A stretch of DNA of 59,567 nt, filler included, from Sluysia triapertura (Eukaryota): NCBI GenBank assembly GCA_046118255.1. It is 4 parts of 4 records of this genome, joined end to end, with 100 filler letters (N's around TTAATTAATTAA, not from the genome) between each part and the next. Parts side by side here need not be neighbours in the genome. Positions count along the whole stretch, not along the records: positions 1 to 17,087 come from JBJNIA010192939.1; 3 more parts are not named here. One strand, 5' to 3'. Below are positions 1-16,596 of the stretch, in pieces. The notes under the pieces are model-generated. The model did not search any database. It was given only the letters and a program-made list of their open reading frames with translations, and was not told the DNA's origin. The first letter of the stretch is position 1, and each line of letters starts with the position of its first letter. Both the position numbers and the translations under genes were made by a program.

Positions 1-1299
1 TGTGAATTAATTATTGTGAGATGTAGTTTGGTGAAGTGTTAAGATTGTATTTTATTGTTTTATGAAATGATTTGAATAATGTTTTATGTTTGAAGGGTGT
101 GATGAGAAATATTATTTTATGTGGTGAATTTTTATTTTATTATTGAGTTAAGGGGTTGGCCACTACAATAAATAAAAATTTTTAAAAAATAAACAAATTA
201 ATTCTCGTGAATAATAGTTTTGATACAAAAGCTTATAATAAAACGTATTTATCTGACCGTGACAAAAGTTCTACGATAATTTTTAGTGTTAATAGAAAAC
301 CATCATTTTATAGAGAAGCCGTTTGTTCTGGTATTTTTCTCTTTTTGTTTCTAACTTCTTTTATTTATACTACAGCTTCTTTAATCTCTATTTTATTATT
401 CTTAATACAATAAATTACATGTTAATTTCAGTCATAAAAATAAGATTTTCATTTGAAGATAAATTTAAACTTTAATAAACTTAAAGTTAATTTTGTAATA
501 ATTTAAAAAGTACAATTAAATTAAAATTACATTATTCATTTACATAATACATAAACACCAGCATACCTAACAATCTTAAAATTCATTGGATTGTGTTGTT
601 ATGTTTCACGTTCACTGAAATTATTAATAAACGATTTAAATATGATTAATATGATCTACATTTTTATTGTTATGAAATATGGAAGATAAAATAAAATATC
701 AACAATAAATTGTAAACATTATTTTGTTATTTTTGCATCCAATACTATTTTAATAACCATAAATTTAATTTTGTTATTTACATTTTATTGTTATCGTCGT
801 TTGCCAATTATAATATGAACATCAATTGTATTATACAATTTAAAAATTTAAGTGTTCAAGACACGCCTTTTGAAAATGGTTTATGAAATTCTCAGTATTT
901 CGTTAAAAATTATTTTTAATAATTCAATTAGGTTATAGTTTAAAGGTCTTAAAACAATTCATTTGACCTTTAGTATTATTTTATGAATATTCTACTGCGA
1001 TTATTAAAATACCAAAAATAACTTACTAAAGTTAAAACTAAAATATTTTAACATGTTCGCTACCGGAGCTTGAGAAGAAAATCTTGTATCGTAGCCCATG
1101 GAAATTTTTCTTATGAAATGGACTCTAAATGACATTGGATTTTTTAACTGCGAAACAATAGTGCAACACCTTATCGAAAACTTATAAGGTAAGCACGCCA
1201 CACAACTGATACGTCGCATACTTGTGACGCTGGTAGCGATCGTGTTAATAATTGTAAATTATTTCAACTGTTTAAAATCTTGTGGGAGAGCCTACTATA

Positions 1300-2933: not shown

Positions 2934-3339
2934 TGTTGGGGTAAAAAGGCCTAAAGTGTCATGTAGTATAATTGAATATACTAAAAATAAAATTGTTAGG
3001 CGGGGCTGATAGATCAGTGGTAGAGCATCGAACTTCGTAGCTAGAGGTCCTGAGTTCGATCCCCGGTCAGCCCATTTTACGAAGTCCAACATTTGGTGAG
3101 TCCACATATCGAATATCATTCTGATATTGGAATTAAATAATTTATAAGATGTTTGAGGACAAGCATAATTGAGTTGGTTGAGATATGTTGGGGTAAAAAG
3201 GCCTAAAGTGCCATTTGGTAAAATTGATTATAAAAAATAAAATTGTTAGTGGGGCTGATAGCTCATTGGTAGAGCATCGACTGTGCAGACAAAGGTCCCG
3301 GATTCGATCCCCGATCAGTCCATTTTATGAAGTCTAACA
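2934..3339 (+). mobile_element. Putative two-LTR miniature retrotransposon (TRIM) with tRNA-like sequence inside each LTR
   Basis: Direct repeats 2934-3091 and 3186-3339, each TGTTGGGG...AACA. PBS-like TGGTGAGTCCAC starts 2 nt after LTR1 (3094). The internal region is 94 bp, with a weak G-rich tract before LTR2. Outer flanks AATC/AGTC fit a 4-bp TSD with one mismatch. Confidence 0.7.
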
Positions 3340-4985
3340 AGTCTATGAGATTCTTGTTTTTTCAATAATGCATTAAAGCATGGTAAACTACGTTCATATT
3401 TCATCTGTTTATTTTGTTAAAACTACAACTTTTTAAAATTAATTAATATCTTATTAATAAGTGATACCTTTGGTTAAAAATATCACGACGGCATGCTTAT
3501 GTAAAGTCTAAAAACAAATATTGAAAATCATTTATTAAAAATAATTTGTTAAGTGGTTATGCTTATCGTGATAAATAATCGATTGCAGTTTAATCTCTCG
3601 GATTTTTAAATATTATTAAATAATGTAATACCAAAAAATGATTAATAATCATAATGGTTGCTGCAACACTATTCGTTATGTCTATCTTCTGACGATGTCA
3701 ATGATAATTTTTACATCATGCTGCACCATTTTAATTGCACCAAAAACGCCGTCACACCACCTCAAATTTAAGAATATTCTACGAGAAATCATTCGTCATT
3801 ATTATATAGCAGTGGAAAGTGGCAAACTTGCAATCTACTTTAGTGGTTTGTATTTGTACGCATATTAGACGCTTATATGACACAAACATAAACACATACG
3901 AAAAGTCTTATACCTGAAATATTTGACCTCAAATAGCCATGAAAATGATATTTATGCAATAGTGCGAAGTAACGACATCAATATGATTGGTATTGCAACG
4001 TAATATTAATTGCAAAGTTAATTATTGTTGTAATGAACCCTAAGTTATTCCACAGAATTCGAATATGCACCAAATCAAGATTCAAAGATCGTTTTAGTTA
4101 AAACTCATAACAGTATGAACAAAGCCTTTCTTTTTTTACGAATTGTCTATAGCTGTTGAATTCCACATGATAATCTATCATCACATAAATAATAGAATTG
4201 TAACTCCTACAATTTGTCAAAGGACTGATAAGCCCAAAACCAAAATAATAGAATTTTATTTGTTCAAATATGGATTTTACGTCAGATAGAAATATACGAT
4301 ACGAACGATTTCTGGATAAACAACAGAATTTACGATTTGAGGGATCCTGTTATAGATAAACTTAAGTTTGAGGATAGCGTTACTGTTACATTGGTTCCAC
4401 TCCTTAGTAATAACAGCAGCACTTTAAATAAAACAACTATTAACAATAACCATAATATAAAACAACCATAAAAATGTTTGTTAAAATTTAGTAATATAAA
4501 TCTACGAATTTAATCCTCATTTTTTTCATTTCAATTGCGACCAATGTTGCGGTCCAAGTTCTTAACTTTTACTTATTTCTTAGTCATGTGTAATATTTTG
4601 CCCTAATGCGTAAGATAAGAAAGGATAAATCAGTCCATTATCTGACCACATCTGATGGATGTTCCCAATCATTTTGAGTCATAAGGTTGTGATGATAAAG
4701 CTCGTAGTTATTTTCGTAGTAAACATAGTAATATTTAGTTTATGTAAATATTTAATTTTTAAAATTAATTTTAGTTATTACCCTATTATATATCTTTGTG
4801 TCTTTTTCAAATATACGGTTCAGTGTGTGCTCGATTGGACGACGTTCTATAAAAAGTATTATTTCATAGCTACTTATACACATCATTTCATTATATATGT
4901 TTCCATTTTCTATTCGAGAAAATATTGTTTTATTTAAAATAATTTAAATAAAGTTTTGACTTAGAAAAATGAACTGTGATATCAC

Positions 4986-5147
4986 TGTTGGGTGCAGGCT
5001 TAAAGTACCATAGAATAATGATTGTATAATTGACTATAATAAAACAAAATTGTTAGACGAGGCTGAAAGCTCAGTAGTCATAGCACAAATCTGAAGCGAG
5101 AGGTGCTTGGTTCAATTCCCATTCAGTCCATTTTATGAAGTCTAGCA
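4986..5147 (+). mobile_element. Diverged solo copy of the tRNA-containing LTR family
   Basis: TGTTGGGTG...TGTTAGACGAGGCTGA...TCAGTCCATTTTATGAAGTCTAGCA; no TSD recognisable. Confidence 0.75.
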
Positions 5148-6249: not shown

Positions 6250-6810
6250 AAGAATGATGAAGGTGAAAACATATACAGTCATTTTGAGAATTAAAGAATA
6301 CTTCGAAGTTTCAAAGACCCATGTTAGATGTTGAGACACCTGACGAAGATTGAGATTATTATGAAAACGTTTCAAAATATTAAACGTTTGAGCCTACAAA
6401 CCTTGAGATTATTTAAGGTCTTTTAAACGTTTAGGGATCTGTTAGACTTCATAAAATGGACTGATCGGTGGTCGAACCCGGGACCTCTCGCTCCGCAGTT
6501 CGATTATCTACCCGCTGAGCTAACAATTTTAGATTATTAAAATCAATTATACTAAATGGCACTTTAGACCTCTATCCCAAAAGATCTTTGAGACCTTGAT
6601 AACCTTGTAAAGCGTTTGAAATATTTAAAATAATAGTTAACATGGAGAAATATAAAAAGGAATCAGAGTGATGAAGGGCAAAGCGTTCATAATCTCCTGA
6701 GAATCACAAAGTACCAAACAACTTTATAACTTTGTGAAAACCTTTAAGCATAAAATAAGATAATGGCTAAAAGTAGTTTACTTAATTAAAATTTTCATAA
6801 TTTTAATTAA
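6250..6810 (+). repeat. Dispersed repeat family R3, copy 1 (interrupted by a tRNA-LTR)
   Basis: GATGAAGGTGAAAACATATACAGTCATTTTGAGAATTAAAGAATACTT matches in reverse TATTATTCAATTCTCAAAATGACTATAGATGTTTTGATCTTCATC at about 41610-41655. Confidence 0.6.
6440..6582 (-). mobile_element. Solo copy of the tRNA-containing LTR family with perfect 4-bp TSD (GATC)
   Basis: Reverse complement of the family consensus, with GATC at 6436-6439 and 6583-6586; nested in another repeat. Confidence 0.8.
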
Positions 6811-9281
6811 GGAAAAATACGTTTTTATGAATAAAGTTTGAATGCAAAATGTTATGGCAAAGTTGTGACTTTTATGTGATGGTTTAAATAAGATATTTCG
6901 ACGAATATACATTTTGACGATTGCATGCAACGAAAGCTGTAGTATTGAGAAAAGTCAAATTTTAATTAACTCTTAATTTTTTATGTTTAGAATGATGAAA
7001 ACATAGTTTGATTAATAACAATAACTGAATAACAAAATTAAATTAGTCTGAAATCTCTATATATTTTTAATAATGACAAATTATCACAATAATATAAATC
7101 AATTAATAAAATGTAACATAACTAAAAAAATGTTTGTACCCGTATAAATATAACAAAACAAATATAACAGGCGTGGATTAACTAACCAGAATCACGCAAC
7201 AAAATATGAAAAATTACTAAACATGAAGCTTTTATCATAATGTTTGCCATGACCCCGTTGAAGCAGAATTGATTTAACAAGCAAAGTTGTACTTTAATAA
7301 TATACTCTGCAATTTATGAGTGTATTTTAGTAAAAATGTGATCGCTGGAAATGCAACGTAATTATGTTGTGTAATTATTTTGTGTTATTATTTTGAGTCG
7401 GTTATAACCCAACCAATTTTAACAATTAAATTTCAATTATAATTTCCGCCAAATTTCTGTTGACTTCCAATTTATTATCTTCCATCAATTATCAAAATAT
7501 AATGAGATTTGTGGCAAACAGTTCTTGTATATAATTAGCATAATAAAATCGAAATTTAATAAGATTATCATAGTAGTGTTTACTTTTTAAATAAAATATT
7601 AACTTAAATTAACATAAAATCATTTAAATAAAAAACTTCTTTTCCATAATAAATAAATAGTTGTGATAGATAAATTGTTAAATTAGTAAGCAGTGAAACC
7701 CAAAGTTATAATATTTGATCAGCATTATGAAGAGATCCTTTGTCAAAAAATGTATATAAAATAAATTAGATTCTATTATATAAATCAGTAGAATCTTAAT
7801 TCACTCGAGAAACGAAGTTTAAAGTCACCATAATTGATTAGCAATAGGTTTAGACCCTCCATTAAAATGTCCAGCAATTAAATATCAGTATACATATCCA
7901 TTTAATATGACGAATTTAAAAGTTAAAAGTTAAGCTATTAAAATTTAACTTTACACGTTAAAATTGCTCACTTACAGTTACAGGTATACCAACTATGCGT
8001 TGTAAACCTTTTACTATAATGGCACAATGCTAAAATTACAAATGAAATTATAAATATCGAACAAATTTTTATAATCTAATAAGATATCAATCGATTAGAT
8101 TTTCTGAATACTCTGTTCGAATTGAATTTTCGTGTGCGTGAACAAAAACTTTTAACTTAATGTTTATCTTTATATTACTCTGTGGCAAATTTACGTTGTA
8201 CTACTAACAAGCAAATTTTTCAGGGTCTTTTTTATATCTATTTTATAATTGTCATTTAATAACTTAATATAATTGAATGTAAATATATTCATTATTATTA
8301 TTACTTTTGCAAGATGTTTTTCTTTTTCTTTAACCTAAACAAAATATCTTTAACTTGAAAAATATCTAAGGATCAGTTCGCCTAATAAACACGATTTACG
8401 TTTATTTCTACGTGTTATTAGGGTTTCTAGAATCAGTAAAAGCATTTTAATAAGCAGAATACCTTGACAGTATATGTTTCAATGCTATTTTACATGAGCA
8501 AAATATTAATATTAATGAGACTATCTAACTCTTGCTTATTCGGTGATGCAATGTTCAATAAACAATTTAAGTTTATAGTATGTTAATGGTTTTCCAAAAC
8601 TATTAAAACGTAAATTAATAATTATGTGCGATTAATTATAAATACTTAAGCAATACTTAGTTAATAATTGTTAGAGCTAAAATTTATTAAATCGATTAAA
8701 AATACTAAAAGTAAAATGAACAAATAAATCATTTACAAAACATGCAACTAAATCATTAAGACTAATCAAATTGCTTACAAAATTACAACAATTTAACAGA
8801 TAAAATGTAACATGATATTAAGAGAGACTTATTATTTTATGACTATAAGATTATTTTGAGCTAGCTTTTAAGAATTTAACTTCTCTATTTAAAAGAGAAA
8901 CTTGATGAAACTTACAATAATAAATTTACACAAAGCAAAAATAATTGTTGAGTATTACAGGATCAATACAATTATTTTTCTTCTTGATTAGTGTTTACTG
9001 TTATTAAAATCTAATTTCTTCTAAAAATTTGTACTGTCAAAATGAGAAAAAGTTTACTTGTATATATATATTTCATAACATAAAGCCACAACACAAAAAT
9101 TGATTCAATTAAACAAAATCAAAAACTTTTGTAATTTATTAAATTCATTATTGAAATTCATAATTAAAATTATTAAATTTTTTAATAATTAAACATTCTT
9201 AAATAATTTATAATAAAAATTAAATATTTACAATTAATTTTTTAATTTCAATAATTATCAAAAAATTATTTTAATTACAAA

Positions 9282-14282: not shown

Positions 14283-16455
14283 ATCACAACGAAAAAATCA
14301 AATGTAAAATTATAATAATTTTATAATAATAATATTAGGGTTATTAATTATTATTATTATTTTTTCTAATAATAATTTATTTTCATTCAATATATATTAG
14401 CAAAATTATTTACTAACAGAATTATATCATTTTATTTAAAATTATATTATTGAAAATAATTCTTTAATGAACTAACAGATTTAAATTGTTTAATAAATTG
14501 ATTCCAAATAAATCGTTCTTTCAAAACCACAATTTTATTAAAATTCTATATCAGTGTAACAGTGTAAAGTTCGAAATTTGTGTGAATCACTATTTATACA
14601 TCTTTACATTTCTATTTTAGCTACATTTTATTTTTATAATTTCAATAATTTTATATTTTCAATAATTAAAACTGTTGGGCAAAGATAGATATAAAGGTTC
14701 AAGATTCAGGATAAAAGAATAAGATAAACATTATTGAGGAATTGAGATAGGGATTATGATGAATTGTAATGATAAGATAAGTATATGAAATACTCGAATC
14801 AACCTTTTATAAGGTTTATTTGTTAAAATATTAAAGTACAATTGTTAATTAACTTAATTAAAAATTATTTAATTTGATAACTCAATAAAAATGTTTGCTC
14901 ATGATATAATGTTGAGTTTTATTATTTGTTCTAGTAATGAAGTGTTACGAAGCACGTCAACGCAGATAACGTAAAATTGGTTATTTTAATTAATTTTGTA
15001 ATTAAAAATTAAAGATTGAGCATTAATAAAGTATATATCAGATAAAAGCTTATAAAGAAACAAGTCAGTATACACTATTGAGATTAACGTGTTACGTCTG
15101 ATATAAAATATTGTTATTAAAAAACGTTTTATACCAGATTATAAATATAGGTAAATTATGATGATGTATTTTTATACCTGTTTGTGTAATTCCAATTGTG
15201 ATATTAAATTGTGATTTGATTATTTTAAAGAGATATCGGCTTGTTCTTCACAAAACGCATTATCTTCAGATAGTTGTCAGGCAATGTAAAGGCATAAAAC
15301 CGACTCTAAGAAAATAGCATGTGTGGTAGACATGCAAAATAATTAAAGTGAATTCCCGACTACCTGACAATTATCTCGATATTATATAAAGAGCTAACTT
15401 TTTACATAAAAACACAACAACAATCCAGAAAAAACGATAACAGTAACAAGTGACAAATTAGTCAAGAACTTCTTGCCATAAGGACTCTGGATTCAGTTGA
15501 GTTGTGCATAACACTAATTGAATCTTTTTCTTCAGCAATAACATTAAGACAAAATAAGTTCACGTGGTTAGTAGAGAGTTAGGAGAGTTAGTTTTGTCTT
15601 TATTATTATTATATATTTTATTTTTCGTAACGACATTTATGTTGTGTAACTCCTGCGATTTTTAAAGAATTAGACAATAACTTATTAAATAATTTGATTT
15701 AAAGAAGTGTTTTAACTATATAAAAAGTTCGATTTATATAATTGTGATATAAAGAAGTTGATTTATAGAATTGTATTTGTAATATAAAGATTTGGTTTTA
15801 TTTGATTTTTAGTTATTAAAGAGGGATATCATTAAACGAAAAAACACAACAAAACAATAATTTAATAATTTTAATAATAATAATAATTTTAATAAAATTT
15901 TCAATAAAATTATAATAATTTAATAATAAACTTAATAATTAAAAGTAAAATTATCCAAAAAAGAAATTATAATAATTTAATAATAAACTTAATAATTTTT
16001 ATTAATTTTTTACATTAAAATATTAAAATATTACATCAGAAAACATTACATAAAATAAAAAACATAAAAATCATTGCAATTTCAACAAGTATTTCAGTAA
16101 TTACAATTAATTTTCTACAATTTCATGTGCAACATTAGAGCAACATACATTCTTAACTTTGTGGATCAGTACAAATACATCAGTAAATTATAAATGCATT
16201 GGTACATGTATTATCCCAAAGCCAAATATACTAGAATTCAGAAAAATTCCTAATTGCGTTCTTTTATGCTTTCGTTGGGAAAAGTCAGGTAGTGAAGGAA
16301 TAGGTTTATTTAATTGATATTTTAGGGTTTCGTAAGGCGTAGTAGATGGTGTAATAGTAAGTTTGAATTCGAAGAAGTTTCTAAAAGATCCTTTAAAGAA
16401 AATATGATTGAAGTTCGACATATTGCACAATTTGGAAACTTATTAGTGTTAATAT

Positions 16456-16596
16456 TGTTTATGTAAAGGCCTAAAATGTCATTTCGTATAATGATTAATT
16501 GACTATAATATTATGAAATTGTTAGATTGGGCTGATAGCTTAGTGGTGAGAACATCGAACTGCACAACTACGAAGCGAGAGGTTCGGGCTTCGATT
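16456..16596 (+). mobile_element. 3'-truncated copy of the tRNA-containing LTR family
   Basis: TGTTTATGTAAAGGCCTAAAATGTC...TGTTAGATTGGGCTGATAGCTTAGTGG...GCGAGAGGTTCGGG. Confidence 0.7.

Follow-up and report, generated by a model that had tools for sequence, protein, structure and literature searches.

Structure of the element at 2934–3339

The window analysed here, a stretch of 59,567 nucleotides from the assembly of Sluysia triapertura (GCA_046118255.1), contains at 2934–3339 a unit of 406 bp, which the sequence reading and a repeat finder resolve into a 158-bp LTR, a 94-bp interior and a 154-bp LTR with TG..CA ends. The two LTRs start with TGTT, end with AACA and are 84–86% identical on alignment, with a K2P distance of 0.16. 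A motif starting with TGG lies at 3094, 2 nt past the first LTR, and the outer flanks read AATC (2930–2933) and AGTC (3340–3343). We looked for an A-rich or simple-repeat tail at 2934–3339 and for an ORF in the 94-bp interior (3092–3185), and found neither. The Rfam tRNA model matches each LTR once, at 3003–3074 with 35.5 bits and at 3252–3322 with 36.3 bits (gathering score 29); ARAGORN calls the first of these tRNA-like modules (3003–3074) as well, with an aberrant anticodon loop. Both modules begin 70 nt into their own LTR, and TTTT follows directly after each. Beside the start of the second LTR the family conserves a polypurine-tract (PPT)-like form, GAATTGGGTGAGATA; the conserved GGGTGAGATA that abuts the LTR is short and only 8/10 purine. 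This copy is degraded: its A and B boxes are one base off each, its primer binding site (PBS) agrees at 9/10 positions and its target-site duplication (TSD) at 3/4.

Much of this architecture had been described in a first-pass annotation made from the sequence. The repeat finder and the alignment recovered its two direct repeats of 158 and 154 bp with TGTT...AACA ends at the same coordinates, and its TGG motif 2 nt after the first LTR, its non-coding interior of 94 bp, its AATC/AGTC flanks and the lack of a tail are all present as described. The difference of about 15% between the LTRs, judged by eye, agrees with the aligned identity, and the PPT is indeed weak. The internal placement of the tRNA-like cassette also stands, whereas its offset, given as about 65 bp, is corrected to 70 nt by the Rfam match.

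The features are listed below by position and strand; the last three, all degenerate LTRs, share a 17-kb contig with the element.

2930–2933, no strand: left TSD, AATC; 3/4 positions agree with the right flank, AGTC
2934–3091, plus strand: 5′ LTR of 158 bp, TGTT...AACA; direct repeat of 3186–3339, with both ends shared by family copies
2934–3002, about 3003–3078 and 3079–3091, plus strand: putative U3, R and U5, respectively, of the 5′ LTR
3003–3074, plus strand: tRNA-like module 1; Rfam RF00005 at 35.5 bits against a cut-off of 29, and ARAGORN
3010–3020, plus strand: box A-like TAGATCAGTGG; differs from the family form by one base
3053–3063, plus strand: box B-like AGTTCGATCCC; differs from the family form by one base
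3075–3078, plus strand: TTTT, a Pol III terminator-like run read from the sequence, directly 3′ of tRNA-like module 1
3092–3185, plus strand: non-coding interior of 94 bp without an ORF; kept in all full-length copies
3094–3125, plus strand: PBS TGGTGAGTCC (3094–3103; 9/10 against the 3′ end of the host tRNA-Trp) and the decayed remnant of a longer tRNA-Trp complement
3171–3185, plus strand: weak stretch GAGTTGGTTGAGATA abutting the 3′ LTR, a putative polypurine tract
3186–3339, plus strand: 3′ LTR of 154 bp; direct repeat of the first LTR, with ends common to family copies
3252–3322, plus strand: tRNA-like module 2; Rfam RF00005 at 36.3 bits against a cut-off of 29
3323–3326, plus strand: TTTT directly 3′ of tRNA-like module 2; proposed transcript end (R/U5 border)
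3340–3343, no strand: right TSD, AGTC, from flank comparison
4986–5147, plus strand: degenerate solo LTR, 72–80% identical to family LTRs and belonging to this family or to a sister of it; no adjoining interior and no clear TSD
6440–6582, minus strand: degenerate solo LTR that has lost part of its tRNA-like 5′ region; flanks GATC/GATC
16465–16595, plus strand: truncated LTR fragment of the same or a sister family

A dispersed family with 4-bp target-site duplications

A search of the 619-Mb assembly with the 406-bp unit returned 6,185 first-look candidates, 40 of which were scored. All 40 scored matches span the query from base 1 (or 14) to base 406 at 84–86% identity, and local BLAST found the LTR-interior-LTR layout in 30/30 fetched loci. 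With up to 3 mismatches allowed, the assembly contains 1,230 instances of the 22-nt junction made up of the LTR end, TT and the initial 10 nt of the PBS, an undercount given the divergence of ~15%, against 0 for the reversed control pattern. The family is dispersed and comprises well over a thousand copies. Statements about the family refer to individual natural copies and to per-column statistics.

Among the 27 copies with both ends aligned, 17 are flanked by a perfect 4-bp TSD, and at least 3/4 positions agree in 24. Shuffled pairs of left and right flanks are identical in only 4% of cases, other offsets yield at most 1/27, and a 5-bp duplication is seen in 1/27. The commonest target is ATAT. 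Two of the checks proposed in the first-pass annotation concerned the copy number of the interior and the length of the TSD: the 94-bp interior proves to be multi-copy and always lies between two repeats, and the TSD is fixed at 4 bp (perfect in the 17/27 above) in copies that lack tails. The family also gives rise to solo LTRs. One of them sits inside a DDE-transposase-like repeat with TTAT/TTAT flanks, and a paralogous copy of that repeat retains the empty site with a single TTAT (L067, G000:C213922, versus L065, G000:C101003).

The two LTRs of an element resemble each other more than they resemble those of other copies. Identity between an element's own 5′ and 3′ LTRs averages 88.7% and reaches 96.9%, compared with 85% between copies; the within-element value is the higher one in 25/30 elements (Wilcoxon p = 1.5e-4), and in 8/30 the closest match of all 30 is the element's own 3′ LTR. 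No alignment column separates 5′ from 3′ LTRs across the copies. Elements that moved whole, without LTR regeneration, would leave shared differences between 5′ and 3′ LTRs; the absence of such differences, together with the similarity within pairs, indicates that the LTRs are rebuilt in each cycle. Both LTRs are thus renewed at every round, as in true LTR retrotransposition. K2P distances of LTR pairs range from 0.03 to 0.26 across copies, so that the window copy, at 0.16, is among the older ones, and it is probably dead.

The tRNA-like module and transcription of the element

tRNA-like modules are a general property of the family: 31 of 40 LTRs from 20 other elements exceed the Rfam tRNA cut-off, with scores of 33.7–52.8 bits, while the top-scoring tRNAs of the assembly mostly reach 60–77 bits. 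The family form of the A and B boxes is TAGCTCAGTGG ... GGTTCGATCCC. Anticodons assigned by ARAGORN are aberrant or inconsistent among the modules, which implies that no working tRNA is encoded. An Rfam E-value scan of the window for 5S rRNA gave no hit, and the LTRs produced only tRNA matches. Within the LTR, the bins holding the D-arm with box A and the T-arm with box B are among the best conserved; conservation is lowest in the anticodon bins and in one U3 bin. Sense-strand T runs of at least four occur only directly after each module (27/30 copies for each), compared with about six A runs of at least four per copy; since only ~1–2 additional T4 runs would be expected by chance, their absence is statistically weak.

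Kojima (2024) gave the name Helenus to TRIMs with tRNA-derived sequence in their LTRs (PMC10886601); the first-pass annotation had used this name, for tRNA-bearing TRIMs with 4-bp TSDs in animals, correctly. We consider it very likely that 2934–3339 is a copy of a non-autonomous TRIM of the Helenus type, with LTRs that carry a tRNA-derived Pol III promoter cassette; it would be transcribed by Pol III and mobilised with the help of a Ty3/Gypsy element. Judging by the boxes and terminator-like runs, we infer that Pol III transcription proceeds from the LTR cassette. Under the control of the A and B boxes, the transcript would begin at the 5′ boundary of the module in the 5′ LTR, or close to it, read through the first TTTT and end at the TTTT of the 3′ LTR. 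The R region would then correspond to the tRNA-like module, U3 to the first ~69 nt and U5 to the last 13 nt of the LTR. This model entails read-through of the TTTT in the 5′ LTR, which counts against it.

The module could instead be a passenger, a captured SINE or tRNA sequence within a true TRIM transcribed by Pol II from U3. In favour of this, the anticodon arm is degenerate and no functional tRNA is encoded, and the first LTR of the window copy contains a TATAAT ~25–30 nt upstream of the module. The scarcity of T runs does not reach significance, and the TTTT of the 5′ LTR would halt much of Pol III transcription ahead of the PBS. The pattern of conservation points the other way: across diverged copies the A- and B-box bins are among the best conserved, but the TATA-like U3 bin is among the least. 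Moreover, the only T4 runs sit at the expected ends of a Pol III unit in 27/30 copies, the length of the element fits the Pol III range, and the related Cassandra elements have been reported to make Pol III transcripts (PMC10886601). We therefore regard the passenger explanation as rather unlikely. Pol III transcription of Helenus elements has likewise been proposed, without experimental proof (PMC10886601).

Primer and origin of the interior

A genome search for a tRNA gene exactly matching the majority PBS, TGGTGAGCCCAC, found none. With one mismatch allowed, the search led to a host tRNA-Trp(CCA) gene with AT-rich flanks (L103, 47–118), which has a typical animal body and an acceptor stem of its own. 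The best-scoring genomic tRNAs were set aside; most of them are of vertebrate type or bacterial, with encoded CCA. Once CCA is appended to the tRNA-Trp, its 3′ end is the complement of the initial 10 nt of the majority PBS. An exact 16-nt complement of tRNA-Trp occurs at 9 sites in the assembly (control 0), and 9/9 of these sit 2 nt after a family LTR. Three TRIM copies (L106–L108) carry a full PBS of 18 nt, which implies that the majority form is a decayed 18-nt tRNA-Trp PBS. By complementarity, the PBS pairs with the 3′ terminus of a tRNA-Trp encoded by the host itself; matching it to host tRNA 3′ ends, as had been proposed at first pass, gives 10 nt in most copies and 18 nt in the best.

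The similarity to tRNA-Trp extends beyond the PBS. One copy (L118, G000:C178197:4150–5361) contains in the assembled sequence, at places about 575–615 of L118 and instead of the ordinary PBS, a perfect 39-nt complement to positions 38–76 of tRNA-Trp, which breaks off exactly before G37; the remainder of its interior is that of the family. Across 25 ordinary copies, the part of the interior that follows the PBS can still be aligned to the tRNA-Trp complement past nt 18, with a mean score of 8.6 against 2.8 ± 1.3 in shuffles (99th percentile 6.5). Sequence comparison thus suggests that the PBS region began as a read-through of the primer, of which the family interior retains a decayed trace. Metazoan tRNA-Trp carries m1G37 and m1A58. 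The PBS region of the founder would have been copied from the primer tRNA-Trp during plus-strand strong-stop synthesis that ran on beyond the usual 18 nt, which ends at position 58, as far as the modified G37, where it would have halted; the same read-through into tRNA-Trp would have been repeated later in one copy (L118).

Two further observations concern this region. Several of the differences between the majority and the well-kept PBS fall at CpG, and the least conserved LTR bins are CpG-rich, which hints at CpG hypermutability of the repeat in this host. In another copy (L117, G000:C41867; PBS at 1038–1053, minus strand), the LTR ends inside the T run after the module and is joined straight to the tRNA-Trp PBS, without the 13-nt U5 and the TT. 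This junction could be a simple deletion, or it could derive from an RNA that had stopped at the terminator.

A candidate Ty3/Gypsy partner

TSDs of 4 bp indicate a Ty3/Gypsy-type integrase, on established knowledge and on the Helenus data (PMC10886601). Reverse transcriptase and such a 4-bp-staggering integrase would be provided in trans by a Ty3/Gypsy-type element, and tRNA-Trp would prime minus-strand synthesis. A single locus (L111, G000:C158735) connects the family with an element of this kind: a family LTR, TT and 16 nt of the PBS run straight into a Gypsy RT, from the KKDG motif onwards, which is followed by RNase H and integrase. The RT family of this locus has 2,966 first-look candidates. 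The junction between LTR/PBS and RT is unique, and the homology of 39 other RT copies begins exactly at it; the best reading of the locus is that a single deletion or template switch produced it. Its Gypsy family is a candidate helper, on the basis of this one chimeric locus and the 4-bp TSD.

The same locus bears on a possible derivation of the TRIM by internal deletion from an autonomous Ty3/Gypsy element with an identical tRNA-bearing LTR and tRNA-Trp PBS. Here the LTR, TT and PBS are joined to Gypsy RT in the same orientation, intact tRNA-Trp PBS sites follow this LTR and no other (9/9), and several LTR-PBS units precede long interiors unlike that of the TRIM (L110, L116). These points are weakened by the single-copy nature of the L111 junction and by the interior of L110, which is an unrelated dispersed repeat. 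Loci with related pol (C18410, L114 on C103722 and L115 on C61348) were rejected as partner copies, the family LTR being absent from the 2–4 kb of flank fetched for each. In addition, full-length transcription of an element of at least 6 kb is hard to square with LTRs that contain both a promoter and a terminator for Pol III (PMC10886601). We hold derivation from such an autonomous element, which would mean that the TRIM is no independent parasite with unrelated LTRs, to be unlikely. Candidate partners located through the Retrotrans_gag domain were also discarded: 30/30 of these loci are GC-rich (45–60%), have neither the LTR nor the PBS and seemingly belong to another organism.

An abundant Ty3/Gypsy-like family in the assembly encodes a Monjiviricetes-type fusion glycoprotein (PF24664) directly upstream of PR-RT-RNaseH-IN; we saw it in G000:C18410:1–8600 (L112, L113), L114 (C103722:1–3900), L111 and L115. 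In C18410, the part that was read, the first 274 aa, lies in one 1,661-aa open frame together with the RT. Downstream of the integrase, within the pol frame or next to it, there is a second, distinct aspartic-protease domain, and after it comes a signal-peptide-like ORF. In the fetched parts of this glycoprotein-pol family we saw no gag domain and no LTR.

These observations can be joined in one tentative reading, in which the interior would be largely primer-copied, the PBS being a read-through fossil that extends to the base after G37 and is still refreshed at transposition (cf. L118), the helper would be the glycoprotein-pol Ty3/Gypsy-like family, and L111 would record a template switch between co-packaged RNAs. 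We think it doubtful that all of this holds together. If both parts were true, a Pol III-driven TRIM built from two tRNAs would be moved by an env-first endogenous retrovirus, neither of them described in this lineage.

Comparison with Helenus and other elements

The nearest known system is Helenus, for example Helenus-2_SyJa with its tRNA-Trp PBS or LTR-11_DR with its thousands of copies. Animal Helenus elements have 4-bp TSDs and PBS similarity only to Gypsy elements; they measure 311–1263 bp, reach thousands of copies in zebrafish and include one wasp family with a tRNA-Trp PBS (PMC10886601). The element described here has in common with them short TG..CA LTRs with an internal tRNA-like module bearing A and B boxes, a non-coding interior, a PBS right after the 5′ LTR and the 4-bp TSD; where Helenus has a PPT before the 3′ LTR, it has the weak PPT-like stretch. 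Its 406 bp fall within the range of 311–1263 bp, the tRNA isotype of the module is degenerate, and the tRNA-like part of the LTR is not complementary to the PBS. Unlike the described Helenus elements, in which a PBS of roughly 8–12 nt is highlighted, it has a PBS of up to 18 nt, and of 39 nt in one copy, and about a third of its interior seems to be primer-derived. The element is a new example of a known oddity, Helenus, and not a new kind of element.

Our literature search found no later paper that extends Helenus. Motifs from the LTR ends, the PBS and the interior have no family-level match in DataS1 of the Helenus study (PMC10886601) by motif look-up only: 11/12 short family motifs are absent from it, and the twelfth is the shared tRNA D-arm. 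This outcome concerns identity with a described family and leaves the assignment to the Helenus kind untouched. It is plausible that the family is undescribed, set apart as it is by short motifs and not by alignment. Helenus has been reported from chalcid wasps, bivalves, a brachiopod, nemerteans, fishes and a ctenophore (PMC10886601); the present host does not seem to resemble any of these groups.

The same design, a TRIM whose two LTRs each embed a Pol III promoter cassette ('TRIMp3'), is found in Cassandra of plants, which carries 5S rRNA in its LTRs, and in Ajax of nemerteans, which carries a 5S fragment. The cassette described here differs from theirs in being of the tRNA type, without 5S, and the TSD is 4 bp rather than 5 bp. 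Ordinary animal TRIMs, such as PbTRIM of ants and the TRIMs of bivalves, have the same size, LTR-PBS-PPT-LTR layout, dependence on autonomous elements and solo LTRs, but lack a small-RNA-derived LTR module and are assumed to be transcribed by Pol II.

tRNA-derived SINEs (SINE2) are likewise short, occur in high copy number and possess a T-run terminator and a tRNA-like promoter with A and B boxes, whereas their tRNA head at the 5′ end, tail, LINE machinery and variable TSDs are absent here. A LINE-mobilised dimer of a tRNA-derived SINE, or a SINE of this type duplicated in tandem, would account for the TTTT and for tRNA-like modules that contain A and B boxes, in a genome with about 52,000 first-look tRNA-like candidates. 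It would not be expected to place the module 70 nt inside a repeat with TG..CA ends, to lack a tail, to have fixed 4-bp TSDs, to homogenise its repeats within elements, to carry a PBS that fits the 3′ end of tRNA-Trp with CCA, or to leave solo LTRs with 4-bp TSDs of their own; we judge this origin highly improbable. A MITE-like element or DNA transposon that harbours internal direct repeats would also be short, non-coding and high-copy with a short TSD, but the near absence of terminal inverted repeats (none beyond TGTT/AACA), the direct terminal repeats re-homogenised in each copy, the PBS with its CCA complement and the lone repeats with TSDs, as expected from LTR-LTR recombination, leave it practically no probability.

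As a Helenus-type TRIM, the family adds an independent high-copy case to the small class of LTR retrotransposons with Pol III promoters (Cassandra, Helenus, Ajax). The putatively primer-derived interior and the 39-nt copy of tRNA-Trp provide direct genomic evidence of the priming tRNA and of the site where reverse transcription stopped, which is rare without experiments. There is also a practical consequence: thousands of such LTRs, most of which pass the Rfam threshold, inflate tRNA gene predictions and should be masked before tRNA annotation.

The host and its assembly

The G+C content of the window is 19–29%. An RPB2 exon from an AT-rich contig is only 67–70% identical to every animal compared, and in a quick tree it forms a branch of length 0.81 beside three flatworms with an SH-aLRT support of 98, a position in which long-branch attraction is possible. 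The host is apparently a fast-evolving animal with very AT-rich DNA, and none of the groups reported to harbour Helenus seems to include it.

The assembly is mixed. Contigs of 45–60% G+C (among L035–L064 and L074–L101) contain Retrotrans_gag domains and vertebrate-type tRNA genes, and some tRNAs of the assembly have an encoded CCA in bacterial style, while the TRIM host itself lies at 25–30% G+C. This mixture suggests a parasite or symbiont sample, or contamination. Sub-threshold matches to Rfam C/D-box snoRNA models in the window, at 14549–14630 on the minus strand and at 8089–8161 on the plus strand (28.6 and 27.6 bits), are probably chance matches in AT-rich DNA.
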